This document shows, one piece after another, positions 15,175-49,200 of a stretch of 64,000 nt of DNA (position 1 is the first letter of the stretch; each line of letters begins with the position of its first letter). The stretch is from Cyanophora paradoxa CCMP329 (lineage: Eukaryota > Plantae > Glaucophyta), in the NCBI GenBank assembly GCA_004431415.1, contig QPMI01000560.1, forward strand, positions 434,001 through 498,000, read 5' to 3'. The position numbers and the translations under genes were made by a program. Below the pieces are notes generated by a model. It searched no databases. It was given only the letters and a program-made list of their open reading frames with translations, and was not told the DNA's origin.

Positions 15175-15188
15175 ACTCCTCACTCTGC
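15175..15188 (-). other. Polypurine tract (PPT)-like site
   Basis: The minus strand reads GCAGAGTGAGGAGT immediately before the TG of the 3' LTR. Confidence 0.65.
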
Positions 15189-26835: not shown

Positions 26836-27093
26836 TATCGCAAGGGAGGTTGGACAGCCCCTCGCGCGCAGCCGTGGGCCCGGGATCAGCCACGAGGTTG
26901 CCACGGTGCAGGACAGCTGTAGGGATTAAGAGACTGAGGGGTACAGGAACATCAGGGACTTAGCTACAAGAATGGAACGGAGCGCCTAGCTATACCGTTG
27001 CGCTCACCGCTCCGGCAGCGAAGGCCGCGAGGCACAGGGCTGCAACCTAGCTACTAGGCCGGCCTAGCTAGCTGAACAATGCCTCATGCAACA
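26836..27093 (-). repeat. 5' LTR
   Basis: Direct repeat of 14916-15174; minus-strand termini TGTTGCA...TGCGATA. Confidence 0.95.
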
Positions 27094-27260
27094 CGACTCC
27101 GGCGGGAGGGAGCCCTGCGGCGCTGCTGACTCCAGCCCTGGACATGTACTCCTTCTCCATGCTCCTCTTCGAGATCTCCACGGGTACCGAGCCCTGGCGC
27201 GACCTCCTCCGCTTCGTCCCCGGTACGGTACCCCCTCCATCGCGACCTGGAGGTACAGTA
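27094..27260 (+). pseudogene. Kinase copy B, 3' remnant after the LTR element
   Basis: Resumes DSG..ALDMYSFSMLLFEISTGTEPWRDLLRFVP and then ends without subdomains X-XI or the RBR. Confidence 0.85.
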
Positions 27261-27334
27261 CCCGCCCCAATCCCACCTCCCCATCCCTATGCATGAGCTC
27301 GCTAGTGGTGTAATAGTTACTGGAGGAACGAGGC

Positions 27335-30300
27335 TCAAGTCGGAAAGAGGCACGGGGGCCGGTAGGGCCTTGTGGGGCGCGATGGGAATGATGAGGCCGT
27401 ATGTAGGGCGGAGAGATCGGAAGCGGGGCTGGGCGCGACGGCGGGCGCGTCGAGAGCTATCGCCGGCCTCGCGGGGTCAGCTTCTGAGAAGCTCAAAGGG
27501 GTGGGCGGGATAGGTTCGTGGGAGGGGCGAAGTGGCGGCGAATTCGACGCGGGCCCCTCCGCGGCCCGCTCGGCCCGCGCCGGCGTCGACGGCCCGGCGT
27601 CCGAGGAAGGGCCGGCGACTGCGGCCGGCGGGCCGTCGAAGGGCAGCGGCACTCGGGCAGCCGTCGGCGAGCGGGCTCGCCCGCCACATCTCAATGCAGC
27701 GCCCGTGGAAGCGGTCTGCGGGGGCGTTAGGACGGCGGCGGAACGGACGGGGACCGGCGGTGTGGCGCGGGGCCGGCAAGGCGCACGGCGGCAGGGAGGC
27801 GGCGGGGGCGGGCCGGCGGACAGGGGCCCGAGGCAGATGGAACAATCGAGCCCCGCCTCCTCGGGGGCGGCCGCGGCCTCGGCGGCCTGGCGCGCCTCCT
27901 GCTGGTGCTGGCGTTCTCGCTCGCGCTGCTGCCCCGCCTCCTCCGCCTGCCGCTCCCGCTCGCGCTGCTGCTCCTCTGCTCGCCGCCGCGCCTCCTCCTC
28001 CTCACTCCGCTTCGCCTCCTCGCGCCGCTGCAGCTCCGCCGCCATGTGACGCCGCAGCTCCTGTACCCTGCCGCTGCCCCTCAACGCCTCCAAAAAGGAA
28101 GGGCGGCGGAGGGGCGCACCGGCGGAGGGCGTCGGCGCCGGCGCCGGAGCCGGCGAGCTCCCGCTCCGCCTTCTCCGCCTCCCGCCCCGCCGCCTCCAGC
28201 TGGCCCGCCCCCGCCATGCACCCTGCGGGGCCGGCGGCGTCAGCGATGGTCGACGGGCCGCGGACAGCGGCCGGGCGGCGCACGGATGCGGAGCAGGCGA
28301 GCCTCGAAGTCTCCCGGAGACCGCTGCGAACCCTTACAAGCGGCTGGCCACGGCGGCGGGCGCCGTGCGGACCTTCAAAAGGGCGTCGAGGAGCTTGCGG
28401 GCGGGAGCCCACCGCGCGCCCTCCACGTGCCCCGCGCCGCCTCCTGCCGCGCCGCTCGCCGGCGGACGGGGGCGGGTGGGGCGGGCGGGGGCGCGCACGC
28501 GGTCGGCGGCGTGGCGGGCGGCGCGCTCGGCGCGCTCGGCCTCCTGCCGCGCCCGCTCGCGCTCCTCCTCCGCCCGCTGCCGCTCCTCCCGCTCCCGCCT
28601 CCGCTGCTCCAGCTTGCCGGCGAGGCGCGTCTTGGGGCCTTCTTCTCGCTCCTGTTCGCGGGCGATGCACTCCTGTTCGTGTGCGATGCACTCCTGACGC
28701 GCGGTCATGCCGTCACGCGCATGCACACAGCGCCGGCAAGGTAGGGACGATACCATTACTCCGGGCGGTATTGTGTGCGGCGGCCTCTTGTGGGCCTGCG
28801 ACCAGTCGTACACGATCTGCGAGGCATTCTAATTCTGAAGCAGGAAAGGGAGCGGAGGGAAAAGAAGGACGGGCGGGGCGCGCCTTGCGGAAGGCCTTGC
28901 TGGGGTCGAGGTGGGGGGCCCGCTCGTAGAGAAGCCAAAGCGTATGCAGCGCCTCCCCGACCCCGGGGTGCGTCCGGCCCATTGTTGCCTCGAGGATCCT
29001 CCACCCCCGCTGCGGCCCGAGTGGGCGGCAGGCGGAGCGCGCAAGGTACGGGCCGGGGCGCACGCGGGCGCCGGCATCCATCAGCTCGGGCGGCTTGTTG
29101 GCGGCGAGCTGGAAGCGAGTAAGGTGCATGAGGGCGTAGCCGACGCGCCAGTGTGCCGGCCCATGCGTCGCTCCGTCTCCGACACGAGCCGCTGCGGGGC
29201 CGCCGCGGTTCACACAGGCATGGGTGCGCAAAGGTGGCCGCCGCGCACCATTGCGACCGCCTCAGCCGCGGACGGGTTGTCTAGACCGAACCAGATGTCT
29301 GTGAGCCTCTCGGAGGCCTTTTCAAAGTCACCGATGCCAACGCAGCGGTTGCACACCCGCTCCGCGATAGCCACGGCCATCTAGTCGGGCCGCCCGGTCA
29401 GCTCGGCTGGAAAGAGCCGGGGCGCTCTGCCGCTCAGCCGGGGCGCCACCCGGCTAGCAGAGTGGGGCAGCCAAGGAGGACCTTCAAAAGGCCGAGCGCG
29501 CACTGGAGGCGTCGCGCAGAGGCGTGGTGATCTCCGAGGAGGACGAGGTACTTCGAGACGGGCAGCTGGCAGCAATGCCGAGCGATCGCCGCTTCCTTGC
29601 CCGCCTCCCCTCGTGCGCAAAGGCCGCCTGCGTGGCACCGCCGTGGGCTGGACAGTGCGTGGAAAGTGCGCAGAATGGACCTTGTAGTAGGCCTCGGCCC
29701 CATCGGGATCCTTCATGTCTTGCAGGCACATCCCCAGCATGTACTCCGTCCTGGCCGTGGCCACGTGGACGGACCCCTGGCTCTCATGGCGGAGCGCTAG
29801 CGCTCTCTGCGTATCGGCGAGCAGCGCGCTCCACGTCAGAAGAAGGCTACCTGAAACAGGCATGCAAGGCTCGCGCGCGGCGGGAGCGCACGAGGAGGAC
29901 CTGCTTGGCGGTGGAAAAGTCGCCCTTGCTGGCGTACGTCTTGGCAAGGAGCTCGGCGTGGTCCGCGAGGGCTCCGGGCTTGCTCGCCACCCGCAGCGCC
30001 GCGTCCTCCTCGTACAGCTTCAGCGCCGCCTGGGAGCGCAGGAAGGCTGTTAGCGCGCGCGAGCTGAGGCAGATCATAGCTGCTCGGAGGCCTAGGCGCA
30101 CCTCGTAGAGCCGGATGGCCTTGTCAAAATTTCCGCGTCCGTCATCCAAGTGGAGATGACCGAAGTGCATCGCGCACGCAGCACTCAACGCGTGCTGCCG
30201 CCCGACCCTGTGCTCGAGCATGTCCAGGTACTCCTGCGCATGCGCAACGCGGTCGGCTGGCATTTGGCTCGCGAGAGTTGCAGCCAGGACGGGCCTGCAT

Positions 30301-30718
30301 CTCGGCGATGTACTGGGGCCGGCGGTCTCTAGATCTGCGTAGGGAGAGGAAGAAGAAGGCCAGCGAAAACCCAGCAATGCGAAGACAAGCGTCTTGCACT
30401 CGCCGCACACGCAGTCGGGCGTGCATGTGCATCGAAAGTATTCGAAATCAATCCAAGCTTAAGGAGATGGACCAGCGGCGGTAGCTTCATGAAGATCATG
30501 TTCGTCTGATCATGAGCTGTCCTAGGCCTCCCAGCGTCGTCCTTAAGCTTAAGCTGCTGAATTAGGAGCGCTAGCTTTGTCTGCCGCTGCTGTTCATGCT
30601 GCTGAAGGGCGCCGGCGTCCGCGCCTGCAGCTGTGTCCGATTCGGCAAACTTCTCCGCGGCCGCGCCGCGGCCGCCTCCCTCCTGGTTGCCTCCAGCTGG
30701 CGCGCCCCTGCCATGCAC
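27335..30718 (-). CDS. TPR-like/coiled-coil/RING-H2 protein, copy C (no CCCH)
   Basis: CTCTPDCVCGECK, HRVGRQHALSA, EYMLGMCLQDMKD; the coil runs directly into CSICLGPL RING. Near-identical to copy D, with many 1-bp G/C-run deletions. Start uncertain. Confidence 0.7.
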
Positions 30719-31000
30719 TCTGCTTCAGGGCATGCGCGTCAGCGATATGCAGCGGTCGGGCGCGCGGCGCACGCGTACGGATGCGGATCGGATCCAGAGC
30801 AGGCCAGCCTCGACGGATGACGGGCGGACCTTCACCTTCAAAAGGGCGTCAAAGAGCTATAGGGCTTGCGAGCCCTCCACGTGCCGCTGGGCCGTCTCCT
30901 ATGCCTGCCGCGCCGCTCGGCGGGCGGGCGGGCGGGCAAGCGGCGGGCGGGGGGCGCGCACGCGGTCGGCGGCGTCGCGAACAAGTTTGCGGGAACGTCG
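30560..31000 (-). pseudogene. Displaced duplicate of internal exons of the TPR-RING gene (also at ~36360-36790)
   Basis: Matches the DAADR / HVEG..DALLK / CMAGAGQLEA exons found at ~28130-28520, but degraded by palindromic insertions. Confidence 0.75.
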
Positions 31001-31163
31001 CGTTGCGAAGGGAATTTGAACGTTAACTGACTATAACCGGCCGCGGAATCTCCGGGCTTCGAACCGCGATCCGGGCTGCCGAAGGCGGGTGGAAACCGTT
31101 AGCTGGGGCCCAGCCGGGGCGCTGAATCGCCCTGAAGACGCGTACACGACTCTTCGACGCGCG

Positions 31164-33030
31164 ATGGCCGTCCCCAACGCGACGCCTGGCTCGGGCACCC
31201 GGTGCGCGTAGCCGCCGCGCCCCAGCGGTCAGTCCGATCCGCTGGCGGCCGCTGATCTCTCCTCCGGACAGGAACTGGACGCTGGCCGGCAGCCTCATAG
31301 CGGACGCGGTGCGCACGCCGCTCCGAGCTCTTGGCTGCGCCGCCTGACGCAGGTCCAGGCGGTCGGCCTGGCCGGCTGGGTGGAACAGCGGCTGCTGCGG
31401 CTCGTCGAGGAGCGGGAGGGAAGGAGGAGCTCGAGCGGGGCGACGGGCGGAGGCGGAGGGGCGGGAGGCGTGGCCGGCGCACCTGCGGCTCGGGGCGCGG
31501 CTGCTCGGGCGCGGCGGGGCGGAGGCGGCGCTGCTGCGGGGCTGGGCGGCGCCGGCGCTGGACGCGACGGTCACGCTGGAGCTGCTCGCGCGCTGCGGCG
31601 GCGAGCTCGGCCTGGCAGGCGGCGCGGCCGGCGAGGCGGCGGGGGCGCTCGCGGAGGGCGGGCGATGTGGGCCACTCGTGCCGGTGCCCGCGCTTTGACG
31701 CCGGCGGCTCGCACGAGCCGGCGGCCCTCCTCGCCGCCGCGCTTGCCCTGTACGGCGCCTGCGGCCTCGACGGCGAGCCGCTGCGGGCGCGCTTCGCGGC
31801 GGCGGCGGCTGCTGCGGGGCGGGGCGGGGCGGGGCGGGGGAGGCGTGGCGGGTGGCGAAGGAGGCGGCGTGGTGGGAGCTGGAGCGGGGCAGGGTACCGG
31901 GCGACTACGTGGACCCGGGGAGCTCGCGCTGGGGCCTCCCTCTCGGCGGGGGCCTTCGGGGAGGTCTGGCGCGCCCACTGGCGCGCCCGACCCGTCGCCG
32001 TCAAGGCCCGCCCCGGCCCCGGTCCTGCTCCGCCGCCCCTTCAGGACGACACGGGCTGAGGGGCCGGGGCGGGGGCAGGTGGTGCGGCTGCGGGAGGCGC
32101 GGGCCGTGCGCGCCTTCCTCAAGGAGGCCTCCCTCCTTCGGTGGGCCCGCCCCGCCCCGCCCCGCCCGCCCGCCCGGCGCGGCGCTGAGGCGCGCGCCCC
32201 CGCCCGCAGGTCCGTCGAGCACCCGAACGTGGTGCAGTGCCACGGGTACAGCGTCGGGCCGGGCCCCCGCCGCTGCCCCCGAGCGTGCGCCCCGCCCGCC
32301 GCCCTCCGCCCCCGCCCGGCCGGGCCCGCCCGACGCGGCGGCAGGCTTCGGGTTCCTCGTGATGGACCACAGCCCCCACGGCGACCTCCGGGGTACCGCA
32401 TCCCCCCGCCCCCCCTGCCCCGTACCCCCCGGGACCCTCCCCCGGCAGGGTACCTGGCGCGGCACCCGGGGCTGCGGGTGGGGGAGCGGGCGGGGCTGGC
32501 GCGGGACGTGGCGGCGGCGCTGGCGCACCTCCACTCGCGGCCCCGGCCCGTCATCCACTGCGACCTCAAGCCCTCCAACGCGCGCCAGAGCCTGTACCCC
32601 CTGCTCCTCCTCTTACTCCGATCCTCGTTACAGGTGCTGGTTTCGGGGGACGGGCGGGCGCAGGTGTGTGACTTCGGCCTCGCGAAGGCCCGCATCGCCT
32701 CCCTCTCCGGCGCCGCCCGCCCCGCCTCCTCTGCCTCCTCCTCCTCCGGGCCCTCCCAGGGCTCCCTCTTCGGCACCCTCCACTACACCGGCCCGCCCCT
32801 ACCCCGCTTCTCCCCCCCCCGCTGACGGGGTACCCCCGCAGCACCGGAGGTGTTCGCGTTCGACTCCGGGCGGGAGGGGAGCCCTGCGGCGCTGCTGACT
32901 CCAGCCCTGGACATGTACTCCTTCTCCATGCTCCTCTTCGAGATCTCCACGGGTACCGAGCCCTGGCGCGACCTCCTCCGCTTCGTCCCCGGTACGGTAC
33001 CCCCCTCCATCGCGACCTGGAGGTACAGTA
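31164..33030 (+). pseudogene. HEPN-like/TKL kinase gene copy C, 3'-truncated, recombinant of copies D and B
   Basis: Subdomains I-IX present (VAVK, EHPNVV, HCDLKPSN, DFG, APE, DMYSF); lacks the CW..RP exon and the RBR. Confidence 0.8.
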
Positions 33031-33105
33031 CCCCGCCCCAATCCCACCTCCCCATCCCTATGCATGAGCTCGCTAGTGGTGTAATAGTTACTGGAGGAAC
33101 GAGGC

Positions 33106-36100
33106 TCAAGTCGGAAAGAGGCACGGGGGCCGGTAGGGCCTTGTGGGGCGCGATGGGAATGATGAGGCCGTATGTAGGGCGGAGAGATCGGAAGCGGGGC
33201 TGGGCGCGACGGCGGGCGCGTCGAGAGCTATCGCCGGCCTCGCGGGGTCAGCTTCTGAGAAGCTCAAAGGGGTGGGCGGGATAGGTTCGTGGGAGGGGCG
33301 AAGTGGCGGCGAATTCGACGCGGGCCCCTCCGCGGCCCGCTCGGCCCGCGCCGGCGTCGACGGCCCGGCGTCCGAGGAAGGGCCGGCGACTGCGGCCGGC
33401 GGGCCGTCGAAGGGGCAGCGGCACTCGGGGCAGCCGTCGGCGAGCGGGCTCGCCCGCCACATCTCAATGCAGCGCCCGTGGAAGCGGTCTGCGGGGGGCG
33501 TTAGGACGGCGGGCGGAACGGACGGGGACCGGCGGGTGTGGCGCGGGGCCGGCAAGGCGCACGGCGGCAGGGGAGGGCGGCGGGGGGCGGGCCGGCGGAC
33601 AGGGGCCCGAGGCAGATGGAACAATCGAGCCCCGCCTCCTCGGGGGCGGCCGCGGCCTCGGCGGCCTGGCGCGCCTCCTGCTGGTGCTGGCGTTCTCGCT
33701 CGCGCTGCTGCCCCGCCTCCTCCGCCTGCCGCTCCCGCTCGCGCTGCTGCTCCTCTGCTCGCCGCCGCGCCTCCTCCTCCTCACTCCGCTTCGCCTCCTC
33801 GCGCCGCTGCAGCTCCGCCGCCATGTGACGCCGCAGCTCCTGTACCCTGCCGCTGCCCCTCAACGCCTCCAAAAAGGAAGGGCGGCGGAGGGGCGCACCG
33901 GCGGAGGGCGTCGGCGCCGGCGCCGGAGCCGGCGAGCTCCCGCTCCGCCTTCTCCGCCTCCCGCCCCGCCGCCTCCAGCTGGCCCGCCCCCGCCATGCAC
34001 CCTGCGGGGCCGGCGGCGTCAGCGATGGTCGACGGGCCCGCGGACAGCGGCCGGGCGGCGCACGGATGCGGAGCAGGCGAGCCTCGAAGTCTCCCGGAGA
34101 CCGCTGCGAACCCCTTACAAGCGGCTGGCCACGGCGGCGGGCGCCGTGCGGACCTTCAAAAGGGCGTCGAGGAGCTTGCGGGCGGGAGCCCACCGCGCGC
34201 CCTCCACGTGCCCCCGCGCCGCCTCCTGCCGCGCCGCTCGGCCGGCGGACGGGGGCGGGTGGGGGCGGGCGGGGGCGCGCACGCGGTCGGCGGCGTGGCG
34301 GGCGGCGCGCTCGGCGCGCTCGGCCTCCTGCCGCGCCCGCTCGCGCTCCTCCTCCGCCCGCTGCCGCTCCTCCCGCTCCCGCCTCCGCTGCTCCAGCTTG
34401 CCGGCGAGGCGCGTCTTGGGGCCTTCTTCTCGCTCCTGTTCGCGGGCGATGCACTCCTGTTCGTGTGCGATGCACTCCTGACGCGCGGTCATGCCGTCAC
34501 GCGCATGCACACAGCGCCGGCAAGGTAGGGACGATACCATTACTCCGGGCGGTATTGTGTGCGGCGGCCTCTTGTGGGCCTGCGACCAGTCGTACACGAT
34601 CTGCGAGGCATTCTAATTCTGAAGCAGGAAAGGGAGCGGAGGGAAAAGAAGGACGGGCGGGGCGCGCCTTGCGGAAGGCCTTGCTGGGGTCGAGGTGGGG
34701 GGCCCGCTCGTAGAGAAGCCAAAGCGTATGCAGCGCCTCCCCGACCCCGGGGTGCGTCCGGCCCATTGTTGCCTCGAGGATCCTCCACCCCCGCTGCGGC
34801 CCGAGTGGGCGGCAGGCGGAGCGCGCAAGGTACGGGGCCGGGGCGCACGCGGGCGCCGGCATCCATCAGCTCGGGCGGCTTGTTGGCGGCGAGCTGGAAG
34901 CGAGTAAGGTGCATGAGGGCGTAGCCGACGCGCCAGTGTGCCGGGCCCATGCGTCGCTCCGTCTCCGACACGAGCCGCTGCGGGGGCCGCCGCGGTTCAC
35001 ACAGGCATGGGTGCGCAAAGGTGGCCGCCGCGCACCATTGCGACCGCCTCAGCCGCGGACGGGTTGTCTAGACCGAACCAGATGTCTGTGAGCCTCTCGG
35101 AGGCCTTTTCAAAGTCACCGATGCCAACGCAGCGGTTGCACACCCGCTCCGCGATAGCCACGGCCATCTAGTCGGGCCGCCCGGTCAGCTCGGCTGGAAA
35201 GAGCCGGGGGCGCTCTGCCGCTCAGCCGGGGGCGCCACCCGGGCTAGCAGAGTGGGGCAGCCAAGGAGGACCTTCAAAAGGCCGAGCGCGCACTGGAGGC
35301 GTCGCGCAGAGGCGTGGTGATCTCCGAGGAGGACGAGGTACTTCGAGACGGGCAGCTGGCAGCAATGCCGAGCGATCGCCGCTTCCTTGCCCGCCTCCCC
35401 CTCGTGCGCAAAGGCCGCCTGCGTGGCACCGCCGTGGGCTGGACAGTGCGTGGAAAGTGCGCAGAATGGACCTTGTAGTAGGCCTCGGCCCCATCGGGAT
35501 CCTTCATGTCTTGCAGGCACATCCCCAGCATGTACTCCGTCCTGGCCGTGGCCACGTGGACGGACCCCTGGCTCTCATGGCGGAGCGCTAGCGCTCTCTG
35601 CGTATCGGCGAGCAGCGCGCTCCACGTCAGAAGAAGGCTACCTGAAACAGGCATGCAAGGCTCGCGCGCGGCGGGAGCGCACGAGGAGGACCTGCTTGGC
35701 GGTGGAAAAGTCGCCCTTGCTGGCGTACGTCTTGGCAAGGAGCTCGGCGTGGTCCGCGAGGGCTCCGGGCTTGCTCGCCACCCGCAGCGCCGCGTCCTCC
35801 TCGTACAGCTTCAGCGCCGCCTGGGGAGCGCAGGAAGGCTGTTAGCGCGCGCGAGGCTGAGGCAGATCATAGCTGCTCGGAGGCCTAGGCGCACCTCGTA
35901 GAGCCGGATGGCCTTGTCAAAATTTCCGCGTCCGTCATCCAAGTGGAGATGACCGAAGTGCATCGCGCACGCAGCACTCAACGCGTGCTGCCGCCCGACC
36001 CTGTGCTCGAGCATGTCCAGGTACTCCTGCGCATGCGCAACGCGGTCGGCTGGCATTTGGCTCGCGAGAGTTGCAGCCAGGACGGGCCTGCATCTCGGCG

Positions 36101-36510
36101 ATGTACTGGGGCCGGCGGGTCTCTAGATCTGCGTAGGGAGAGGAAGAAGAAGGCCAGCGAAAACCCAGCAATGCGAAGACAAGCGTCTTGCACTCGCCGC
36201 ACACGCAGTCGGGCGTGCATGTGCATCGAAAGTATTCGAAATCAATCCCAAGCTTAAGGAGATGGACCAGCGGCGGTAGCTTCATGAAGATCATGTTCGT
36301 CTGATCATGAGCTGTCCTAGGCCTCCCAGCGTCGTCCTTAAGCTTAAGCTGCTGAATTAGGAGCGCTAGCTTTGTCTGCCGCTGCTGTTCATGCTGCTGA
36401 AGGGCGCCGGCGTCCGCGCCTGCAGCTGTGTCCGATTCGGCAAACTTCTCCGCGGCCGCGGCCGCGGCCGCCTCCCTCCTGGTTGCCTCCAGCTGGCGCG
36501 CCCCTGCCAT
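33106..36510 (-). CDS. TPR-like/coiled-coil/RING-H2 protein, copy D (no CCCH)
   Basis: Near-identical to copy C with fewer homopolymer indels; RING CSIC..CR|HRFHGRCIEMWRASPLADGCPECR; start uncertain. Confidence 0.75.
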
Positions 36511-36962
36511 GCACTCTGCTTCAGGGCATGCGCGTCAGCGATATGCAGCGGTCGGGCGCGCGGCGCACGCGTACGGATGCGGATCGGATCCAGAGCAGGC
36601 CAGCCTCGACGGATGACGGGCGGACCTTCACCTTCAAAAGGGCGTCAAAGAGCTATAGGGCTTGCGAGCCCTCCACGTGCCGCTGGGCCGTCTCCTATGC
36701 CTGCCGCGCCGCTCGGCGGGCGGGCGGGCGGGCAAGCGGCGGGCGGGGGGCGCGCACGCGGTCGGCGGCGTCGCGAACAAGTTTGCGGGAACGTCGCGTT
36801 GCGAAGGGAATTTGAACGTTAACTGACTATAACCCGGCCGCGGAATCTCCGGGCTTCGAACCCGCGATCCGGGGCTGCCGAAGGCGGGTGGAAACCGTTA
36901 GCTGGGGCCCAGCCGGGGCGCTGAATCGCCCTGAAGACGCGTACACGACTCTTCGACGCGCG

Positions 36963-38620
36963 ATGGCCGTCCCCAACGCGACGCCTGGCTCGGGCACCCG
37001 GTGCGCGTAGCCGCCGCGCCCCAGCGGTCAGTCCGATCCGCTGGCGGCCGCTGATCTCTCCTCCGGACAGGAACTGGACGCTGGCCGGCAGCCTCATAGC
37101 GGACGCGGTGCGCACGCCGCTCCGAGCTCTTGGCTGCGCCGCCTGACGCAGGTCCAGGCGGTCGGCCTGGCCGGCTGGGTGGAACAGCGGCTGCTGCGGC
37201 TCGTCGAGGAGCGGGGAGGGAAGGAGGAGCTCGAGCGGGGCGACGGGGCGGAGGCGGAGGGGCGGGAGGCGTGGCCGGCGCACCTGCGGCTCGGGGCGCG
37301 GCTGCTCGGGCGCGGCGGGGCGGAGGCGGCGCTGCTGCGGGGCTGGGCGGCGCCGGCGCTGGACGCGACGGTCACGCTGGAGCTGCTCGCGCGCTGCGGC
37401 GGCGAGCTCGGCCTGGCAGGCGGCGCGGCCGGCGAGGCGGCGGGGGCGCTCGCGGAGGGGCGGGCGATGTGGGGCCACTCGTGCCGGTGCCCGCGCTTTG
37501 ACGCCGGCGGCTCGCACGAGCCGGCGGCCCTCCTCGCCGCCGCGCTTGCCCTGTACGGCGCCTGCGGCCTCGACGGCGAGCCGCTGCGGGCGCGCTTCGC
37601 GGCGGCGGCGGCTGCTGCGGGGGCGGGGCGGGGGGCGGGGCGGGGGGAGGCGTGGCGGGTGGCGAAGGAGGCGGCGTGGTGGGAGCTGGAGCGGGGGCAG
37701 GGGTACCGGGGCGACTACGTGGACCCCGGGGAGCTCGCGCTGGGGGCCTCCCTCTCGGCGGGGGCCTTCGGGGAGGTCTGGCGCGCCCACTGGCGCGCCC
37801 GACCCGTCGCCGTCAAGGCCCGCCCCCGGCCCCGGTCCTGCTCCGCCGCCCCTTCAGGACGACACGGGCTGAGGGGGCCGGGGGCGGGGGGGCAGGTGGT
37901 GCGGCTGCGGGAGGCGCGGGCCGTGCGCGCCTTCCTCAAGGAGGCCTCCCTCCTTCGGTGGGCCCGCCCGCCCCGCCCCGCCCCGCCCGCCCGGCGCGGC
38001 GCTGAGGCGCGCGCCCCCGCCCGCAGGTCCGTCGAGCACCCGAACGTGGTGCAGTGCCACGGGTACAGCGTCGGGCCGGGGCCCCCGCCGCTGCCCCCCG
38101 AGCGTGCGCCCCGCCCGCCGCCCTCCGCTCCCGCCCGGCCGGGCCCGCCCGACGCGGCGGCAGGCTTCGGGTTCCTCGTGATGGACCACAGCCCCCACGG
38201 CGACCTCCGGGGTACCGCATCCCCCCGCCCCCCCTGCCCCGTACCCCCCGGGACCCTCCCCCGGCAGGGTACCTGGCGCGGCACCCGGGGCTGCGGGTGG
38301 CGGAGCGGGCGGGGCTGGCGCGGGACGTGGCGGCGGCGCTGGCGCACCTCCACTCGCGGCCCCGGCCCGTCATTCACTGCGACCTCAAGCCCTCCAACGC
38401 GCGCCGGAGCCCGTACCCCGGCCCCTCTTTTCCTCTTACCCTCATATGCAGGTGCTGGTGTCGGGGGAGGGGCGGGCGCAGGTGTGCGACTTCGGCCTCG
38501 CCAAGGCCCGCATCGCCTCCCTCTCCGGCGCCGCCCGCCCCGCCTCCTCCGCCTCCGCCTCGGGGCCCTCCCAGGGCTCCCTCTTCGGCACCCTCCACTA
38601 CACCGGCCCGCCCCTACCCC
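36963..38620 (+). pseudogene. HEPN-like/TKL kinase gene copy D, truncated after FGTLHYT
   Basis: Open from the HEPN-like exon through GAFGEVW; HCDLKPSN and DFG present; no APE exon follows. Confidence 0.8.
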
Positions 38621-38883: not shown

Positions 38884-41800
38884 TCAAGCGGGGAAGAGGC
38901 CCGGAGGCCGGTAGGGCCGCGTGGGGCGCCGGGGGAAGGAGGAGGGCGGGGGGGCGGGGGCAGGCTGGGCGGATGGTAAGGAGAGAGAGGCACTGGGGCC
39001 CTCCTCGGACGAGGCCGGCGAGGCGGGCTGCAGCGGCGGCGGCGGCGAGGCGGGGCCCGGCGCGCCCCGCTCAGCCCGCGGCGGCGTCACCGGGGCAGCG
39101 GCTGGGGAGGGCCGGCGGCCGGCGGGCCGTCGAAGGGGCGGCGGCACTCGGGGCAGCCGTTGCCCGGCGAGAACGCCCGCCACTTCTGAATGCAGGGCCC
39201 GTGGAAGCGGTCTGCGGGGCCGTGAGACGCGGGGCGCATGCGGGGGGTGGGGCGGGCGGGGCGCACGGCGGCAGGGGAGGGCGGCGGGGGGCGGGCCGGC
39301 GGCAAGCGGCTCGAAGCAGATGGCGCACTCGAGGCCCGCCTCTTCGGGCGCCGCCGCGGGCCCGGCGGGCCCCGCATAGTGCCGGTACCTGCCGCCCTGC
39401 GTGAGAGAAGCGAAAGAGGGAGGAGCGGTGCCGGCCCCGCACCGGCAGCGGGCGCCGTCGCGGCAGGCGCCCCTCGCGAAGAAGCGGCACGGGGCAGCCT
39501 GCGCAGGCCCCCATGATCTTGAGCTAGAAAAAAAAGCGGCCTCGGCGGGGGCCGCCGCGGGGGCCGCGGCTCCGTGCTGGAACCTGCGAGGGGCGTGGGC
39601 GGGGCCCCCCGCGGCGAGGAGGGGCGAGGGGCCCACCGGCAGCGGGCGCCGTCGCGGCAGAAGCCGGCGGCGAAGAAGCGGCACGCCGCCGCGCCCGTGC
39701 GGGCGGTCTGCGGTGCCTCGGCCGCCTGACGTGCCTGCTCCTCGCGCCGCTGCTGCTCCCGAGTCGCTTCCGCCCGCCGGCGCCGCTCCTGTTCCCGTCG
39801 CCGCTCAGCCTCGGCCGCCTGGCGCTCGTCCTCCTCGCGCCGCCGCTCCTCCCACGCCCGCGCCTCCTCTTCCAGTCGCAGCAGTTCCAAGGCGGCCGCA
39901 GCGGCCTCTGCCGCCCGCCGGGCCTCCTCCTGCCGTTCCTGCTGCTGGCGCTCCTGCTCCTCCCGCAGCCGCTGCTCCGCCTGCCGCTCCCGCTCGCGCC
40001 GCTGCTCCTCCGCCCGCCGACGCGCCTCCTCCTCTTCCATTCGCTTCGCCTCTTCTCGCTGCTGCATCTCCGCCGCGATGCGGTGCCGCTGCTCCTGTAT
40101 CCTGCCGCCACCCTCGGTACCCGCAGAGAGGAGGGGCGGCGGAGCGGCGAACCGGCGAAGGGCGTCGGCGCCGGCGCCGGAGCCGGCGAGCTCGCGCTCC
40201 GCCTTCTCCGCCTCTCGCCCGGCCGCCTCCAGCTGGCCCGCCCCCGCCATGCACTCTGCGGGGCCGGCGGCGTCAGGGCGATCTACAGCTCCGTGCAGCG
40301 GCCGGGCGGCGGCGCACGGATGCGGAGCAGGCAAGCCTCGAAGTCGTCCGGCGACCGCTGCGAACCCTTAGAAGCGGCGGGCGCCGCGGCCGGCGGGCGG
40401 ACCTTCAAAAGGGCGTCGAGGAGCTTGCGGGCGGGTGCCCACCGCGCGCCCTCCACGTGCCGCTGCGCCGCCTCCTGCCGCGCCGCTCGGCCGGCGGGCG
40501 GAGGCGGGCAAGCGGCGGGCGGGGGCGCACCCGGTCGGCGGCGTCGCGGGCGGCGCGCTCGGCGCGCTCGGCCTCCCGCCGCGCCCGCTCCCGCTCCTCC
40601 TCCGCCCGCCGCCGCTCCTCCCGCTCTCGCCTCCGCTGCTCCAGCTTGTCGGCGAGATCCCTGTTGGGGCCGATATATTCACAGTAGACTTGAACTGGGG
40701 ACTCCTGATCGCGGACGATGCGCTCCTGGCGGCAGGTCAGGGCGCCGATGCTCTCCTGCCAGCGCGGGCAAGGCAATGAGCGAGACCATCGTCTCGGGCG
40801 TCATGCAACTCGGCGGCCGCTTGTTTTCCCGTGCCCATTCGTACACAATCTGTGTGAGAAATTGTGAGCGGCGCGAGCGGCAGGCGACCCGGAGGGGCAG
40901 GCAGGGCAGAGCGCGCCCTGCGGAAAGTCCTGTAGGGGTCAAAGTGGGGAGCTCGCTCGTAGTGGGTCCACAGCAAGAAGAGCTCGTCGCCGATCCCGGG
41001 GCTGGTGGGGCCCTCGGTCGCCTCAAGAATCTTCCATGCACGCTGCGGCGGTGATCACGGTCAGCGGCAGACGGGACGCGGCGGGGGCACGGGTGGTGTC
41101 AAGAGTGCGGGCCGCACGCGGGCGTAAGGTTCGACCAGGTCAGGAAGCTTGCAGACGTTCAAGAAGAAGCGGGCGAGGTGAATCAGGGCGGATCCGACGC
41201 GGCGGTGCGCCGGGCCCAGGCGCTGCTCCGTCGCCTCCACGAGCCGCTGCGGGGGGCGTGAGGGCAAGGGGCAACTGGATGCGGGGCAAGGCACCCTGAT
41301 GACCGTCTGGGCAGCTACGAAGTCGCCAAGATCTTCCCACAGGCGCGCGAAGCCCATGGCGGTCTGCTCTAAGAAGCCGCGCTCGAGGCAGGCGGGGCAC
41401 ACGCGCTCCGCGATTGCCAAGGCCATCTGCTCAGGCGGTTGGCGGATCCGGGCGGCGCGGTGGGAACATGGAACCGGACCTGCATTAGCCCGAGAGCGTG
41501 CTCGGAGCGCCCCCCATCGGCGTGGCGCTCCGCAATGACGAGGAAGGTGGCGGCGACGGGCAGCCTGCAGCAGCGTCGCGCGATCGCCGCTTCGTGTCCA
41601 GCCTCCTGCTCGTGAGCGAAGGCCGCCTGCACGCGGGGCGTGGGCGGCGACCGAGAGCCAGAGTGCAGGACATGCACCCTGAAGTAAGGTTCGGCGCCTT
41701 CGACTTCAGACTCAGCATATCCTAGCATATACTCCGTCGCGGTCGTGTCCTCGTGCAATGGTCCCTGGCTCTCCTGGCGGAATGAGAGCGCCCACTGCGA

Positions 41801-42432
41801 GGTGCGATGTTAAAGGATGCGGCGCGGGGTCGGTGCAGGGCGCACGAGGAGGACCCGCTTAGCGGCCGCGAGATCGTCTATTTTCGAGTAGATCCCCCCA
41901 AGGATCTCGGCGTGGTCCGCGAGGGCACCGGGTTCTGTCGCCGCTCGCAGTCGCGCGTCCTCCGCGTACAGCGCCAGCGTCGGCTGCGGGGTGCAGAGTG
42001 CGCACGACGCGGGAAAGAGAGCAAAGAGCGGGAGGCGGGAGTCGGAGCTGCGAGGGTCGCACCTCGTAAAGCCTGACGGCCACATTCAAAGCCGCGAAGG
42101 CCTTTTTCGTGTCCTTTATCGCCTTGGAAAGCATGTAGTGTATATAGGCGAGGCGGATTGCGTGCGCTGCGCTCAAGGCGTGCTTCCGCCCGAGAGACTG
42201 CCTGAGCGTGCGCTGATTTTCCTGCGCAAGGCAGTTGTCTGGCGCGTGGACGCGAGGACGCTAAGTTGAGGACCTTGATCAGCTTGAAGTGTTGGGGGAA
42301 AGCTCCCGGTTTCGAAAGATCGAGATCCCGGCCATGTAGCTTGCAGACACGTTCCTTGCAGGGAACGCACACGCTGTCGCGCGTGCATGTGCAAATGAAG
42401 AACCCGTCGCGTTGAGGCGCATCCGGGTCCAT
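38884..42432 (-). CDS. TPR-like/coiled-coil/2xCCCH/RING-H2 protein, copy E (cleanest model)
   Basis: Splices as MDPDAPQRDGFFICTCTRDSVCVPCK..|ENQRTLRQSLGRKH..RLYE|..|WALSFRQESQGPLHEDT..|..LGPAHRRVG..|coil|CRFFAAGFCRDGARCR|FQH..CRFFARGACRDGARCR|YRH..RING..LFPA*. Confidence 0.85.
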
Positions 42433-42873
42433 TGCGATGGGCGAGCAAGGGCGAGCGCAAGTCTCGGCGCTGGCGGCGCTGAGCTGCGTGTGCGCGACAC
42501 GCCCGGCTTCAGTGCCAAGCGAGTCGAGATTGATCGGAACCGCGGAACGCACCCGGAACCTCTGGGCTTCGAACCCGCGATCCGAGGCTGGCATCTTCAT
42601 CTTTCAGCTCCTTTACGCGAGCTTCTAGCTCCAGAAGCTGCGGAGCTGTTGAAATCATTCTCGCGAGCTTTAGGCGCGAGCGCGCGACGCGCCCGGCCGC
42701 GGCCTTGCCGGGAAAGGAGCGCAAGAGGATCTGCCGTGCTTTGAACCCGCGATCCGGGGCTGCTGAAGGCGGGTGGAAACCGCTATAGCTTGCAATTGCT
42801 GGGGCCCAGCCGGGGTTCGGAATCGCACCCGCGACTTGTGCCGCGAGACACGTACACGACTCGCCAGCGCGCG
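42433..42873. promoter_or_regulatory. Putative bidirectional promoter of the gene pair, with a conserved ttcgaacccgcgatcc motif
   Basis: Short spacer between divergent ATGs; the motif recurs in all five spacers (~7720, 13046/13080, 31058, 36855, 42568/42741). Confidence 0.5.
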
Positions 42874-45800
42874 ATGACCGTCCCCAACGCGACGCCGGGC
42901 TCGGGCACCCGGTGCGCGAGATCCGGACCGCCGCGCCCCAGCGGTCAGCGCGATCCCTCCGGTCGTCACTGACTTGTTCTCGGGGCAGGAACTGGGCGCT
43001 GGCCGGCAGCCTCATAGCGGACGCGGTGCGCCCGCAGCTCCGAGGCTCGGACTGCAGCGCTGACGCGGGTCCAGGCGGCCGGGCTGGCCGGCTGGGTGGA
43101 GCAGCGGCTGCTGCGGCTCGCCGAGGAGCGGGGAGGGAAGGAGGAGCTCGAGCGGGGCGACGCGGCGGAGGCGGAGGGGCGGGAGGCGTGGCCGGCGCAC
43201 CTGCGGCTCGGGGCGCGGCTGCTCGGGCGCGGCGGGGCGGAGGCGGCGCTGCTGCGGGGCTGGGCGGTGCCGGCGCTGGACGCGACGGTCACGCTGGCGC
43301 TGCTCGCGCGCTGCGGCGGCGAGCTCGGCCTGGCGGGCGGCGCGGCCGGCGAGGCGGCGGGGGCGCTCGCGGAGGGGCGGGCGATGTGGGGCCACTCGTG
43401 CCGGTGCCCGCGCTTCGACGCCGGCGGCTCGCACGAGCCTGCGGCCCTCCTCGCCGCCGCGCTCGCCCTGTACGGCGCCTGCGGCCTCGACGGCGAGCCG
43501 CTGCGCGCGCGCTTCGCGGCGGCGGCGGCGGCGGGGCGGGGCGGGGCGGGGGGCGGGGCGGGGGAGGCGTGGCGGGCGGCGAAGGAGGCGGCGTGGGGGA
43601 GCTGGAGCGGGGGCAGGGGTACCGGGGCGACTACGTGGACCCCGGGGAGCTCGCGCTGGGGCCTCCCTCTCGGCGGGGCCTTCGGGAGGTCTGGCGGGCC
43701 CACTGGCGCGGCCGCCCCGTCGCCGTCAAGGCCCGCCCCGCCCCTGGCCCCGGCCCCGGCCCCGCCGGTGGGCTGAGCTCGAGGGGGGCGGGGGCGGGGG
43801 ACAGGTGGTGCGGCTGCGGGAGGCGCGGGCCGTGCGCGCCTTCCTCAAAGAGGCCTCCCTCCTCCGGTGGCCCCCCGCCCCGCCCGCCCGCCCCCGCCGC
43901 CCTGAGGCGCGCGCCCCGCCCGCAGGTCCGTCGAGCACCCGAACGTCGTGCAGTGCCACGGGTACAGCGTCGGGCCGGGGCCCCCGCCGCTGCCCCCCGA
44001 GCGTGCGCCCCGCCCGCCGCCCTCCGCCGTGCCCGCCCGACGCGGCGGCAGGCTTCGGGTTCCTCGTGATGGACCACAGCCCCCACGGCGACCTCCGGGG
44101 TACCGCGCCCCCCCGCCCCCCCTGCCCCGTACCCCCCCGGGACCCTCCCCCGGCAGGGTACCTGGCGCGGAACCCGGGGCTGCGGGTGGCGGAGCGGGCG
44201 GGGCTGGCGCGGGACGTGGCGGCGGCGCTGGCGCACCTGCACTCGCGGCCCCGGCCCGTCATCCACTGCGACCTCAAGCCCTCCAACGCGCGCGCGAGCC
44301 TGTACCCCCGGGCCCCCCTCCCCGGCTCACTCTCCTTTGCAGGTGCTGGTGTCGGGGGAGGGGCGGGCGCAGGTGTGCGACTTCGGCCTCGCCAAGGCCC
44401 GCATCGCCTCCCTCTCCGGCGCCGCCCGCCCCGCCTCCTCCGCCTCCGCCTCGGGGCCCTCCCAGGGCTCCCTCTTCGGCACCCTCCACTACACCGGCCC
44501 GCCCTACCCCCCGTCTTCCCCCCCCCCCCTCCCCCCCGCTGACGGGGTACCCCCCGCAGCTCCGGAGGTGTTCGCGTTCGACTCCGGGCGGGAGGGGAGC
44601 CCGGCGGCGCTGCTGACCCCCGCCCTGGACATGTACTCCTTCTCCATGCTCCTCTACGAGATCTTCACTGGGACCGAGCCCTGGCGCGACCTCCTCCGCT
44701 TCGTCCCCGGTACGGTACCCCCCTCCATCGCAACCTCTCGGGTCGTACCCCCCACTGACCCTCGTGCCCCCGCAGACAGCGTGATCAGCTCGGTGCTGGC
44801 GGGGCGGCGGCCGGCGCTGCCGCCGGCCTCGGTCTCCTTCCCCCCCGCCGTCCGCGCGCTCCTTGTGCGCTGCTGGGACCAGCGGCCCTCCGCGCGCCCT
44901 TCCGCCGACGAGGCCCTCCGCATCCTCGTGCGCCTTCGCTTCGGTACCCCCGCCCCACCCCGTCCGCTTCGCCAACTGGGCACCGCAGGAGCAGGAGATG
45001 CGGCCGGCGCCCCCTCCCTCCGCCCCCCGCACCTACGTGGACCGCATCGGGCTCGCCCCGCCCGCCTCGCCGGCCGCCCCCTCCTTCGACGTCCCCTCCA
45101 CGCCCCCCCGCACCGCCCTGCCCCTCGCGACGGCCCCGCCCTCGTCCGCCTCGCCTGCCGCGCCGGCGCCGGCGCCGGCCCTCTGCGTCTCGTGCGGGGA
45201 GGGCCCCGGGGCGCCGGACGCGGAGGGGGCGCCGGCGCCGCCGCTGGTGGCGGTGACGTGCGGGTGCCGCTACTGCCGCGCCTGCCTCGCCCGCTGGATC
45301 CTCCAGTCCTGCCACGACATCTCCAACATGCCGGCGCGCCTTCTCAGAGTCTCCGACCCCCCTCCTGCCTTCCGCCCTGACGCCCCCCGCGCGCTCCCTG
45401 CAGCCGCGGTGCTGCAAGCGGGAGATCAGCGCGAAACTGGCGGCCTCTGTGCTGGCCAAGGAGGAGCACGCGCTCTTCGTGCGGCGCTACCAGGCGCACG
45501 TCCTCGAGGCCAACGCCAAGGAGAAGATGTAGTGCGCCCGGCCTCTCCTCTCCTCTAACCTTCTTCCCCTTCCTAAGCTTTCTTTCAGCTGCCCGGTGGC
45601 GACGTGCTCGGCCTTCGTCAACCTCGACTCGTACCTCTTCGCCCCGCCCAACACCCCCATGTCCTGCCCCATGTGCGTCTACTCGCCCCGGCACGCCCTC
45701 AGCTTTCTGATTAGTGCTCAGGTGCCGGGCGCTGCTGTGCTACACGTGCCGGACGCTCTTCCACGCGGGGCTCACCTGCGCCGAGTTCCAGGCGGCGGCG

Positions 45801-46127
45801 CAGCCCGACCCCGACGAGGTCCAGGCCCAGTCGCTGACCCTCAACCACGTCCGCTGCGCCCGCTGCGCCATGTTCATCGAGCTCGAGGGCGAGGCCGAGG
45901 CCTGCCGCCGCATCCGCTGCCCCCAGTGCGCCGCCGAGACCTGCGCCCAGTGCCGCAACGCCCGCGCCGCCTGCCTCTGCCTCGACCGCGGCGCCTCCGT
46001 GCAGAGCGCCTCCAGCGCGGGGCCCAGCAGCAGCGCCGCCAGCGCCGCCAGCAGCGCCGGCCCCGGCGCCGAGCGCCCGGCGCCCCTGCCCGAAGAACCC
46101 GATCGGGAGCCCGGGCCACCCCCGTGA
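42874..46127 (+). CDS. DUF4559/CXorf38-like HEPN domain + non-RD TKL protein kinase + RBR (RING1-IBR-RING2) E3 ligase fusion
   Basis: 14-exon model: RNWALAG..LAGWVE..DATVTLALL..RAMWGHS; GAFGEVW, VAVK, HCDLKPSN, DFG, APE, DMYSF, CWDQRPSARP; CVSC..CGCRYCRAC..CC; YCPVATC..CPMC..CYTC..H..C; CARC..ACRRIRCPQC..CAQC. A few 1-bp G-run deletions at ~43595-43690 are probably sequencing errors. Confidence 0.85.
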
Positions 46128-46204
46128 GCCCCGGCGCGGCGGCTCCGAGCTCCAGGAGCGAGCTCGAGCTCTGTTTCCGTCCTGTAAAACCTGTAAAGAC
46201 CTAC

Positions 46205-49200
46205 CTAGAGCAGTACACGTGGAGGAGCGCGGGGGCCGGGGCCGGGGCTAGCTAGGGCTGGGTGAGGGCGAGGGCGCGGAAGGAGGCGTGGGGCCCCTCG
46301 AAGGCGGCGAGGTAGGGGCGCGCCGCGGGGCTCGCCTCCAGCGGCGCCAGGAACACCTCCGCCCGCTGCGAGGCGGATCAGATCAAATCCCATCCCATTC
46401 CATCCCATCAGAGCGGGCCTGGGCGTGGGAGAGGCCGTCGCGGGCGACGGCGTCGAGGGCCTGCGCGCTGTCCACCAGCTCCACGTGCTGCCCCCGGCCC
46501 CTGGCTCTCAGGCGAGGAAAGTTGCCAACGAAAGTTCGGGGGGCACCTGGGTGAGGCGCTGGGCGAGGCCGGCCTCCGTGACCTCCCCCGCCGCCACCTT
46601 CCCCAGCACCTCCCCGGCCTCCGGCCACGCCCGCGCCCGCTTCCGCTGCGGCTGCGCCCCGCTCTCAGGCGGGCGGGCGGGGCGGGGCCTAGCCTAGCAT
46701 GGGCGTGCCTCGGAGTCGGCCATGGACTCGAGGACGCCGAAGAGGGCCCGCGACACGTCCGGGATGTACCGCGTCTGCCCCGCGTTGGGCGGGAGGCGCG
46801 GGGGGCGGGGAGGGGGGGCGCGGCGCACGAGGTTGCGCTTGCGCTCGGCGCGCTCCCGCTGCGCCGCCGCCCGCACGATCTTCGCCTTCAGCTGCGGGAC
46901 GGTTCAGATCGAGGATGCTGGGCGCGCCCAGGCTCGGCCCCCCTTGCCCCCGGACCTGGAGGCAGCAGTTCATGATGGCGCTCTTGACGGCGGCCTTGAT
47001 CTCGTCGATGTCGTCCCCGATGTACTCCTTCCCCGTCCCCTTGAACGGCACCTGCGCCCCCGCGGGGTCGGGTGATGGGCGGCGGAGAGCGCTAGGCCGG
47101 GGCACCTTCGTGGAGACGATGGAGACGAAGACGCCGATCTTGTCCTCCTTTGCCCGGATCTTGTACGCCGCCCAGCTGCCGCGCGAGCTTGAGCGGGCTG
47201 GAGCAGGGAGGGGGGAGGCGAGAGGGAGGGGCGCGCTTGACGCTCTTGTTGGCGGTGCGGGTGGCGACGTCGGCGCCCTGCTCGAAGAGCAGCGGGATGC
47301 GGTTCGCGAACCTGCGCCCCCGGCGTCAAGGGAGCAACGTCGGAGGAGAGGCGGGGCGGGGCAGGGAGGCGGGCCGAAAGACGGTGATGCCGGGCTTGAC
47401 GGCCTTGCCCCCCAGCGCCACCGCCGCCTCCACGATGAACGGGTGGCCCTCGTGCACCCGCGCCCTGCGGCGGGGAGGGTACCGGGTTAGATGTGGGGGC
47501 GGGGGTCCAGGGCTGGGGCAGGGGCAGGGGCGGACGGCTCCTCCCAGGTGGCGACCATGTCGGGCTTGAGCTGCTGCATGACGCCGAGGCGGAGGTTGTA
47601 CTCCCCCGCGGGGCTCAGGCAGTCCCCCGACACCTTGTCGAACGAGACCTGGTGGAAGAGCGAGTGCAGCCTGCGCCGCCGCGTCAGAGGCGCCGCGCCG
47701 GCGGCCCGAGAGCAGAGCCGGGCGCGCCGGACGAGCTGCTTGTCGGAGATGGAGCGGACGGGCATCCCCGGGCTAAAGTCCTCCCCCAGCTCCGCTGCGC
47801 GCCGCAGCAAAGCTCCAGGGCGCAGCGGGGCGGCGGCGGCGGGGCAGCGGCGGGGACCGATGAGGCGCTGGGCGAAGGCCTTGTTGATGGACGAGAACTC
47901 GTTCATCAGGAACTTCTCCAGCCCCTCGTGCCGCGTCTCCTGCGGGGGGAGGGTGTCGGCGGAGAGGGGGCGAGGAGGGGGCGCTGGCCCGCCCTCTGGC
48001 TCGCGGGCGCGCCTGGACGAGGTGCTTGATGGTGATGAGGTTGACGGCGGAGGGGTGCGGCTTGACCTCCTTCGCCGGCGGCGGCATCTGGTCCGTCCGC
48101 CGCGCGTACCGCATCCCGAACGACTTGCTGCGAACGAATGAAGGGCGGTGAGATGCAGATGGAGGGAAGGGACGGGGGGGCGCACTCCGGGGCGGCGGTG
48201 GAGGAGAACTTGAGCTCGAAGCGGGCGTAGGGCGTGATCACCGCCATCAGCCGCATGTACAGCAGGATGCGCGCCTGCGGAAAGATGAGGCGAGAGAGAG
48301 GAGAGGAGAAGAAGGGGGCGGGGAGGGAGGGGGCGGGCCTTGTAGGTGGTCCAGTTCCCCTCGACGACGATGGAGATCTCGGTGCCGCGCCACTTGTCCG
48401 AGTTGGGGAGCTTCTCGTGGGCCAGGATGTTCGGCTGGTTCCGCCGGATGTCGATGTCGAGCTTGCAGTACGAGACCGGCTCGCCCGCCTTGCGCACGCT
48501 CCGGATCTCGAACGGCAGGTTCGTGCTCATCTTCGACCACAGCAGCGCCTGCGCGCGCCCCGCGCGGCTCGCATCTCCGGGCCCGCGCGGGGGGCGGAGC
48601 CGCAGGGGGCCGCACCATCTTGGAGCCGAGGCCGAACTTGCCGCGCGTCTGCTTGAGGCCGTACCTGCCGCCGGGTCGGCGTGGCGCGGCGGGCCGCCGG
48701 CTGCGCGGGCTGCGCGGGGCGGGGCGGGCGCACTTGGTGCCGGAGAGGACGCGCCCGAGCATCTCGGGGATGTCGTGGTGCGCCATCCCGATCCCGTTGT
48801 CCTGCCCGCCCCCTCGGCCCCCGCCCGGGCCCCGCCCAGGGCCGCCGGCGCCGACGGGAGTCTCCCGCCACGCGCCCCGCCCCGCCGCGCGCACCTTGAC
48901 GGTGACGCGGTAGAAGGTGCGCTCCTTGGGCCCCTTGGGCCCCTTGCCCTCCCCGCCCTTCGCCGCCTCCGCCTCCGCCGCCGCCGCCAGGCCCCCCGCC
49001 CCGTCGGCCTCCCCCAGGGCCCCCTCCTCGGCCTTGCCCTTGGCCTTGCCCTTGCCGGCGGCGGCCTTCTTCTTGGGGCCCGCCTCTTGGAAGAGCTCGA
49101 GGTCGACGCGCTCGCGCTTCTCCAGCCCGATCAGCCGGTGGTAGTCCCCCAGCGACATCTCCTCGCTGCCGCCCCGCCCCCGCCCCCGCGTCAGCCCCGG

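Follow-up and report, generated by a model that had tools for sequence, protein, structure and literature searches.

Can a single gene join a HEPN-like domain, a protein kinase and a RING1-IBR-RING2 (RBR) ubiquitin ligase in one chain, and what would such a chain do? The question is raised by positions 42874-46127 of a 64,000-nucleotide (nt) stretch of the Cyanophora paradoxa CCMP329 genome (contig QPMI01000560.1, forward-strand positions 434,001 to 498,000; hereafter the window). A sequence-only reading had described the locus as one spliced gene for an N-terminal HEPN domain of the DUF4559 type, a TKL kinase and an RBR, and had proposed a kinase-gated RNase or an RNA-binding effector carrying its own ligase. 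The motifs that it quoted, from the N-terminal domain (N-domain), the kinase and RING1-IBR-RING2 with ACRRIRC, are all in place. The spliced gene itself is real, and its N-domain, kinase and RBR are very likely parts of one fused protein.

Three-frame translation and the mapping of reads to 42200-46500 give a gene of 14 exons on the plus strand, stop-free and consistent in all phases, with a product of ~823 amino acids that has no obvious signal or membrane segment. The model holds only with four added bases that the assembly lacks, three of them G residues seen in RNA and one inferred. The 13 introns are 49-77 nt long, nine GT-AG and four GC-AG, and the region has a GC content of 74-83%. The GC donors (43731, 44288, 44497 and 45334) make up a high share of the introns (4/13). 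The RNA status of three sequencing runs is a guessed label and their contigs are here called probable RNA; they are cDNA-like because they skip introns. Most introns are confirmed by these contigs, with the junctions of exons 7-10 seen directly, and the gaps left by the contigs equal the summed exon lengths to the nucleotide, 187 nt over exons 4-6 and 212 nt over exons 12-13. The 115 extra letters of one contig alignment (X17 record 9) are accounted for by exon 2 together with 77 nt of exon 3. The parts of the gene are as follows.

42874-42911 (+), exon 1 with the start ATG, which is kept in all five copies in the window; a probable-RNA contig begins at or before 42757
42989-43025 (+), exon 2, first half of putative HEPN helix 1 (NWALAG...), seen in X17 record 9; scores poorly alone on the bacterial profile described below
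43075-43730 (+), exon 3 as a whole, from the model
43075-43512 (+), N-domain part of exon 3, probable Swt1-like HEPN (collinear blocks; synonymous excess; RNA over 43122-43508)
43378-43395 (+), R-A-M-W-G-H motif, with R1, W4 and H6 as in HEPN_Swt1 RNxWAH and the polar position 2 replaced by Ala
43513-43601 (+), Ala/Gly linker with a G-quadruplex-like run (43533-43564) and a one-base frame slip (43595-43599)
43602-44927 (+), TKL kinase, exons 3-10 (Pfam PF07714/PF00069; RNA junctions)
43602-43730, 43805-43866, 43926-44002, 44052-44099, 44157-44287, 44343-44496, 44560-44709 and 44776-44927 (+), exon pieces of the kinase
44989-45333 (+), exon 11, the first part of which (44989-45183) is a Pro/Ala/Ser-rich linker
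45184-45415 (+), RING1, spanning the end of exon 11 (45333) and the start of exon 12 (45404) and ending PPRCC; weak RING Pfam matches
45404-45779 (+), linker helix and IBR, C6HC complete, in exons 12-14 (45404-45531, 45589-45672, 45722-46127), whose lengths match X18 record 15
45855-45980 (+), RING2 (Rcat), with the catalytic Cys at 45903 (~C750) and Arg at the usual His (Pfam IBR 2.9e-6; HOIP/ARIH2 alignment)
45981-46127 (+), low-complexity tail and stop TGA; RNA contigs extend to at least 46365

The unit formed by N-domain and kinase is present five times in the window, at 7797, 13112, 31048, 36845 and 42729. The four upstream copies end within the kinase, at points that follow VAVK or subdomain VIII or fall in the intron ahead of subdomain X, and a whole kinase with an RBR is found only in the copy at 42874-46127. 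Three of the upstream copies match EukProt gene models of Cyanophora paradoxa tig00021127 recovered with the N-domain.

7799-8770 (+), c8k (EukProt g18844, P0002), truncated after VAVK
13144-27248 (+), c13k (g18846, P0001), with a damaged 5' part, split by a 12-kilobase (kb) insertion and truncated
31164-33018 (+), c31k (g18850, P0003), truncated before kinase subdomains X-XI
36963-38620 (+), c37k, whose N-domain and kinase subdomains I-II lie in a single exon free of stops; truncation follows subdomain VIII

In c37k the N-domain (37194 onward) reads through VAVK with no stop and no correction needed. Comparison of the N-domain exon with c8k, c31k and c37k gives 7-9 synonymous versus 3-4 non-synonymous changes, the introns being 56-78% identical; the frame of the exon is genuinely coding and is constrained or subject to gene conversion.

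One spliced gene with kinase and RBR, as the sequence-only reading had it, is supported by the RNA junctions and the phase-consistent model, although that reading did not mention the frame slips on which the joint with the N-domain depends. In the X18 RNA contig a single G is added at 43657, another at 43674 and a third at 43683, the first of which is confirmed by a DNA run, and only with these three does the kinase Gly loop read AGAFG, so that the loop carried by the paralogs is restored. Single G's are dropped from G-runs by the assembly at these three positions and also within 31400-31960, as a result of which the EukProt models of the HEPN-like/kinase paralogs are garbled. Continuity of the chain is called into question by several observations. 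In the assembly the N-domain and kinase frames lie one base apart at 43595-43599; among the reads mapped, no RNA contig spans 43509-43596 or 44928-45112 (two repeat gaps, the repeat at 43509-43577 having been masked during mapping), so that the single transcript expected earlier is borne out for most introns and not across these gaps; and contig depth is 3-6 over the N-domain versus 16-27 over the kinase, a roughly fivefold step across the linker. These would suit a gene whose N-domain and kinase-RBR are made separately, through a real frame slip at 43595-43599 or an internal promoter giving a shorter mRNA, and the five-G run of the complete copy recurs in c8k. We nevertheless consider separate products very unlikely, since, within 100 nt, the assembly is proven to have lost bases from three other G-runs and paralogs c31k and c37k have one base more than the complete copy at 43595-43599. 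Furthermore, the X18 contig has no mismatch to the complete copy, yet its alignment ends at 43597 with nine letters left over, which we take to be the expected effect of an extra non-G base such as that of c31k and c37k. One further base is probably missing from the assembly at 43595-43599, and with it N-domain and kinase would share a frame. Only three ATGs occur between 42757 and 44100 (the start, the Met within RAMWGH and one after VAVK) and none is usable for a kinase-only product; therefore a complete kinase needs translation from the N-domain frame. The depth step could be explained by the G-quadruplex-like run at 43533-43564, which could stall reverse transcription. Splicing in frame from 43185 to 43602, which would remove the HEPN core, was rejected, X17 record 10 being unbroken across 43122-43508.

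Is the N-domain a HEPN domain? Its motifs are NWALAG (42990), LAGWV (43084), WPAH (43189), DATVTLALLARC (43279) and RAMWGHS (43378), corresponding in the model to GLAGWVE at 28-34, D94 and R127-A128-M-W-G-H132. The R-A-M-W-G-H sequence has the Rx4-6H form of HEPN domains, ends a predicted helix in both AlphaFold models and is kept in 5/5 copies. The sequence-only reading drew parallels between the N-domain and the NW..AG..L.G[FW]V and WP motifs of CXorf38, and its RxxxxH parallel, RNEIMH, is verified for CXorf38, together with D134 (10.64898/2026.05.28.728550). Because CXorf38 has been placed in the Swt1-like group (PMC3710099), the N-domain was compared with a profile of PF18731. For this, 120 prokaryotic loci were fetched by a Swt1-type motif pattern, PF18731 was confirmed on five of them and the profile was built from 112; the pattern itself fixed motif position 2 as Asn, and with it the motif block. 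Two control loci from human-gut metagenomes (L150 and L188) were excluded from the analysis. In a four-block collinear test with hand-chosen blocks the N-domain scored 32.3 versus -6.6 ± 6.2 for shuffles (0/1500 as high), and 24.4 (again 0/1500) once the pattern-fixed motif block was left out. The first 12 residues of exon 3 were the top of 104,027 window 12-mers on the profile. Automatically chosen blocks gave z values of 0.3-3.8, the null cases being those that forced an exon 2 block onto exon 3. In a MAFFT alignment with 70 PF18731 proteins the L, R, W and H were aligned invariantly, and a custom hidden Markov model (HMM) and hhalign both placed, unprompted, GLAGWVEQRL on GLaPFVEREl or RAMWGH on RNrWAH. 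Exon 2 alone has no score on bacterial helix 1, N and G being the only matches.

A good deal weighs on the other side. The scores of these same searches are weak (HMM, -0.1 bits, reached by ~1% of shuffles; hhalign, probability 1.5%, E 0.035, 2/300 shuffles). Pfam and NCBIfam gave no match to the N-domain up to E 10, with the PF18731 gathering threshold not reached. Outside Cyanophora, homologous-protein search, PDB sequences and plasmid tblastn were all blank for it, and a phmmer search of 1.84 billion representatives returned three matches, all paralogs. Modelling from the single sequence gave an AlphaFold predicted local distance difference test (pLDDT) value of 49, and guidance by a HEPN alignment one of 71, a rise that is partly circular. 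Fold searches with both models, which are all-helical and lack exon 2 (half of helix 1), gave no HEPN structure in the PDB, and the structural support that the sequence-only reading had looked for did not materialise. An ESM Atlas fold search with a model likewise lacking exon 2, and run with no positive control, gave one weak row, 'HEPN domain family protein' (template modelling scores 0.30/0.40). The negative fold search is itself weakened because no close HEPN_Swt1 relative is present in the PDB by sequence.

The blank searches and negative folds would be natural if the N-domain were no HEPN at all, but a lineage-specific helical domain or a remnant of HA2_C, the helicase ratchet domain, in which case the real find would be a kinase-RBR fusion with an unidentified N-module. 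The composition of the domain (24% Ala, 17% Gly, 16% Leu) favours chance helical matches, and its top ESM Atlas feature matches are to HA2_C (0.94). This account is doubtful, however, since Atlas recognition is low (1470) and shared features number 136/256, while HrpA HA2, the bacterial control family, has z values between -1.2 and 0.8 in the block test that took HEPN_Swt1 up to 3.8. HA2_C (PF21010) has no Pfam match to the N-domain, and with z at or below 0.8 was rejected at the sensitivity of the block test. Overall the collinear blocks argue moderately for a HEPN-type N-domain, as first proposed, with no structural match to any HEPN to accompany them, and membership of the Swt1 class is fairly likely. 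DUF4559 identity is unsupported: PF15112 gave no Pfam match, and the N-domain has no Cys between GLAGWVE and D94, that is, it lacks the Zn-ribbon insert within the HEPN domain that is a CXorf38/DUF4559 feature (PMC3710099, Table 1).

If it is a HEPN domain, does it cut RNA? The Ala after the Arg, which had been flagged as a caveat, is present in all five copies and in the X17 RNA contig, in place of the N, D or H found at this position in active RNases, whereas R127, W130, H132 and D94 are kept in all copies. Variants with Ala at position 2 have been reported to be inactive in Las1 (H2A) and in Ire1, Csm6 and Cas13 (N2A; bioRxiv 10.1101/760058), and because of this residue loss or strong reduction of RNase activity would be expected. 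Inactive HEPNs of the Swt1 class are known and have been proposed to be RNA binders (PMC3710099). Given a HEPN fold, a pseudo-RNase is thus clearly the likelier state than an RNase, and the domain probably binds rather than cuts RNA. An atypical yet active HEPN RNase gated by its own kinase, a reversed analogue of RNase L/Ire1 for which the RBR would serve as timer or second output, could draw on the retained R127, W130, H132 and Asp94 (equivalent in its order to CXorf38 D134) and on the alternative residues used by some HEPN families (PMC3710099). With position 2 as Ala it is distinctly unlikely; the bacterial PF18731 family has Asn there, though the search pattern fixed that Asn. The kinase-gated RNase first envisaged is accordingly improbable as stated, and the RNA-binding effector offered beside it would fit better.

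The kinase motifs VAVK (43719), HCDLKPSN (44264-44287) and DFG (44379), with the alphaC Glu and APE intact, accompany the Gly loop, subdomain IX Asp and subdomain XI Arg of TKL kinases. Pfam PF07714 and PF00069 match both the kinase exons and the paralog model (4e-26), and the closest solved kinases to the latter are CTR1 (6e-21), FLS2, TAK1 and B-Raf. Judged by these solved relatives of the paralog model and without a tree, it is an intact CTR1/Raf-like TKL kinase of the non-RD type, the residue preceding the catalytic Asp in HCDLKPSN not being Arg. Non-RD kinases are enriched in immune signalling (12/15 immune kinases; PMC8872720), an association rather than proof of a role in immunity.

Beyond the flexible Pro/Ala linker, the order C3HC4 - C6HC - C3HC4 is that of the RBR signature (PMC2904391). 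RING1 has Cys for a usual His ligand and RING2 is divergent, and all three Zn modules are present; Pfam gives RING and IBR weak scores. The alignment of exon 14 to HOIP (E 0.003) and to ARIH2 (E 0.014) places the Cys of ACRRIRC (45900) on the catalytic Cys of HOIP GGCMH and ARIH2 GGCNH. RING2 has Arg at the His two residues past this Cys, a residue used by many RBRs (PMC11354881), as well as Ala for the usual Gly and a loop 2-3 residues longer. HOIL-1, which carries Trp in place of this His, owes its activity to a distal His (10.1101/2022.11.13.516300), and the divergent loop, already noted as a caveat, is therefore real without being fatal. An alternative is a kinase with two degenerate add-ons, a dead HEPN and a pseudo-ligase RBR that binds E2~ubiquitin or acts as a scaffold. 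The RING2 substitutions, the longer loop and the weak Pfam scores would all accord with it, but neither the catalytic Cys nor any of the Zn ligands has been lost and the HOIL-1 precedent applies; we judge it unlikely, and RBR ligase activity is plausible.

How might the three modules act together? Building on the observed exons, intact kinase motifs, RBR Cys pattern and HEPN-kinase fusion in a paralog, we tentatively favour, at somewhat less than an even chance for the whole, a chain in which a pseudo-RNase sensor or dimer domain acts on the kinase and the kinase on the ligase. The degenerate Swt1-like HEPN would be the input module, dimerising and/or binding RNA through the retained Arg, Trp and His; its dimerisation would bring kinases together, and kinase activity would switch on the attached RBR, as PINK1 does Parkin but in cis, so that the RBR could ubiquitylate itself or bound partners. 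The signal order, from HEPN to kinase to ubiquitin ligase (E3), would be the reverse of that in RNase L/Ire1, and a likely setting would be stress or anti-pathogen signalling. The signalling direction, RNA ligand and defence role are suggested by analogy with HEPN dimer biology, PINK1-Parkin and the non-RD class, and by the five-copy array beside a CCCH-RING partner gene. The rival readings partly overlap. A bolder version, also unlikely, is a single-chain RNA-triggered defence switch in which a HEPN of the Swt1 class, sensing or cutting RNA in spite of the Ala, a non-RD kinase and an RBR, co-transcribed head-to-head with the fast-evolving CCCH-RING partner, would combine RNase L-like with PINK1-Parkin-like logic, the truncated spliced paralogs serving as possible decoys or dimer partners.

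Each domain is already known. Swt1-like HEPNs (PF18731; Ava_2192/DUF499-linked bacterial proteins; the Abi2/Swt1 clade of PMC3710099) share with the Cyanophora N-domain the order and nearly the spacing of GL.[FW]VE..L, D...L, L...R..W.H and a final Leu-rich helix, although identity is ~20%, the insert past helix 1 is ~25 residues longer, Ala stands for Asn and no HMM score is significant; their fusion partners in that survey include no protein kinase and no RBR. CXorf38/DUF4559, the animal branch of the clade, likewise has an N-terminal HEPN with an Asp ~30 residues ahead of RxxxxH (D134/R162 versus D94/R127), but differs in its canonical RNEIMH, its Zn-ribbon insert and its partners (dsRBD, NACHT, ankyrin, CARD, DEATH; PMC3710099). 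RNase L and Ire1 also unite a kinase with a HEPN-derived KEN domain in one chain. Their KEN domain, however, lies C-terminal to the kinase, belongs to another HEPN family, is active with Asn at position 2 and is accompanied by no E3, with ankyrin repeats or a luminal sensor instead; in the Cyanophora protein the HEPN-like domain is N-terminal, an opposite order that the sequence-only reading had recognised, and a Pro-rich linker and RBR follow the kinase. DZIP3/hRUL138 (HEPN and RING, with TPR) is a eukaryotic HEPN joined to a ubiquitin-ligase domain (PMC3710099), but it has a simple RING, lacks a kinase and is found mainly in animals. HOIP, ARIH2 and HOIL-1 have in common with the Cyanophora RBR the RING1-IBR-RING2 order and catalytic Cys, whereas the latter lacks the catalytic His and has a kinase in the same chain. 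Control of an RBR by a kinase is known from PINK1-Parkin, as outlined in PMC8767196, and the four plant RBR subfamilies include no kinase-RBR fusion (PMC2904391). The non-RD loop is shared with the immune kinases XA21, FLS2 and Pelle/IRAK, from which the Cyanophora kinase differs in having no leucine-rich repeats, membrane segment or death domain.

The combination of HEPN, kinase and RBR does not appear in the main HEPN survey (PMC3710099), the plant RBR subfamilies (PMC2904391) or the database matches from length-limited, exon-by-exon searches. A search with the kinase C-lobe found only paralog P0003 and one with RING1 nothing, so that the complete copy has no database model among their results; the length limit of these searches leaves room for kinase-RBR fusions elsewhere. 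The novelty thus lies in the combination, akin to a reversed, probably non-cutting RNase L/Ire1 with a Parkin-type ligase and a member of neither family. A single genome is known to have this architecture, and the N-domain, the most exciting of its parts, is also the least certain.

Glaucophytes are an early-diverging branch of the plant supergroup, and to our knowledge almost nothing is known of their cell-autonomous defence. The gene allows compact tests of two ideas: that loss of the position-2 residue turns a HEPN into an RNA sensor, and that an RBR can be activated in cis by a kinase.

The surroundings of the gene show further features. Over exon 3 (31273-31800 and 37072-37600) there are RNA-type contigs that carry c31k/c37k variants, one beginning at the exon boundary, and these truncated copies may be transcribed and spliced. 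The kinase exon of c13k is interrupted by a 12.2-kb insertion (14916-27093) that has direct repeats of 259 base pairs (bp) at its ends, with 99.6% identity, and a duplicated 5-bp target (CGACT), an anatomy like that of long terminal repeat elements, although its longest open reading frames have no Pfam match. At 14005-14015 c13k reads GTG CAC GTG where other copies read GTG, a 6-bp 'inverted triplet' insertion, and similar ones occur at other places in c13k and in c8k. A 5.7-kb tandem duplication (27094-32805 and 32861-38620) has 98.6% identity, and DNA contig depth at ~2x single-copy suggests that it is real rather than an assembly echo. About 440 bp upstream lies the head-to-head partner gene (38900-42430, minus strand), whose product combines a helical N-part and a coiled coil with two CCCH fingers and, at the C-terminus, a RING. 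Identity among the copies of this gene in the array is only 66-80%, a much greater divergence than that of the HEPN-kinase exons. Downstream, the convergent neighbour at 46173-49000 (minus strand) resembles topoisomerase VI subunit B, judging by its translation, and RNA contigs pass into it from the RBR exon, which suggests that the 3' ends of the two genes probably overlap.

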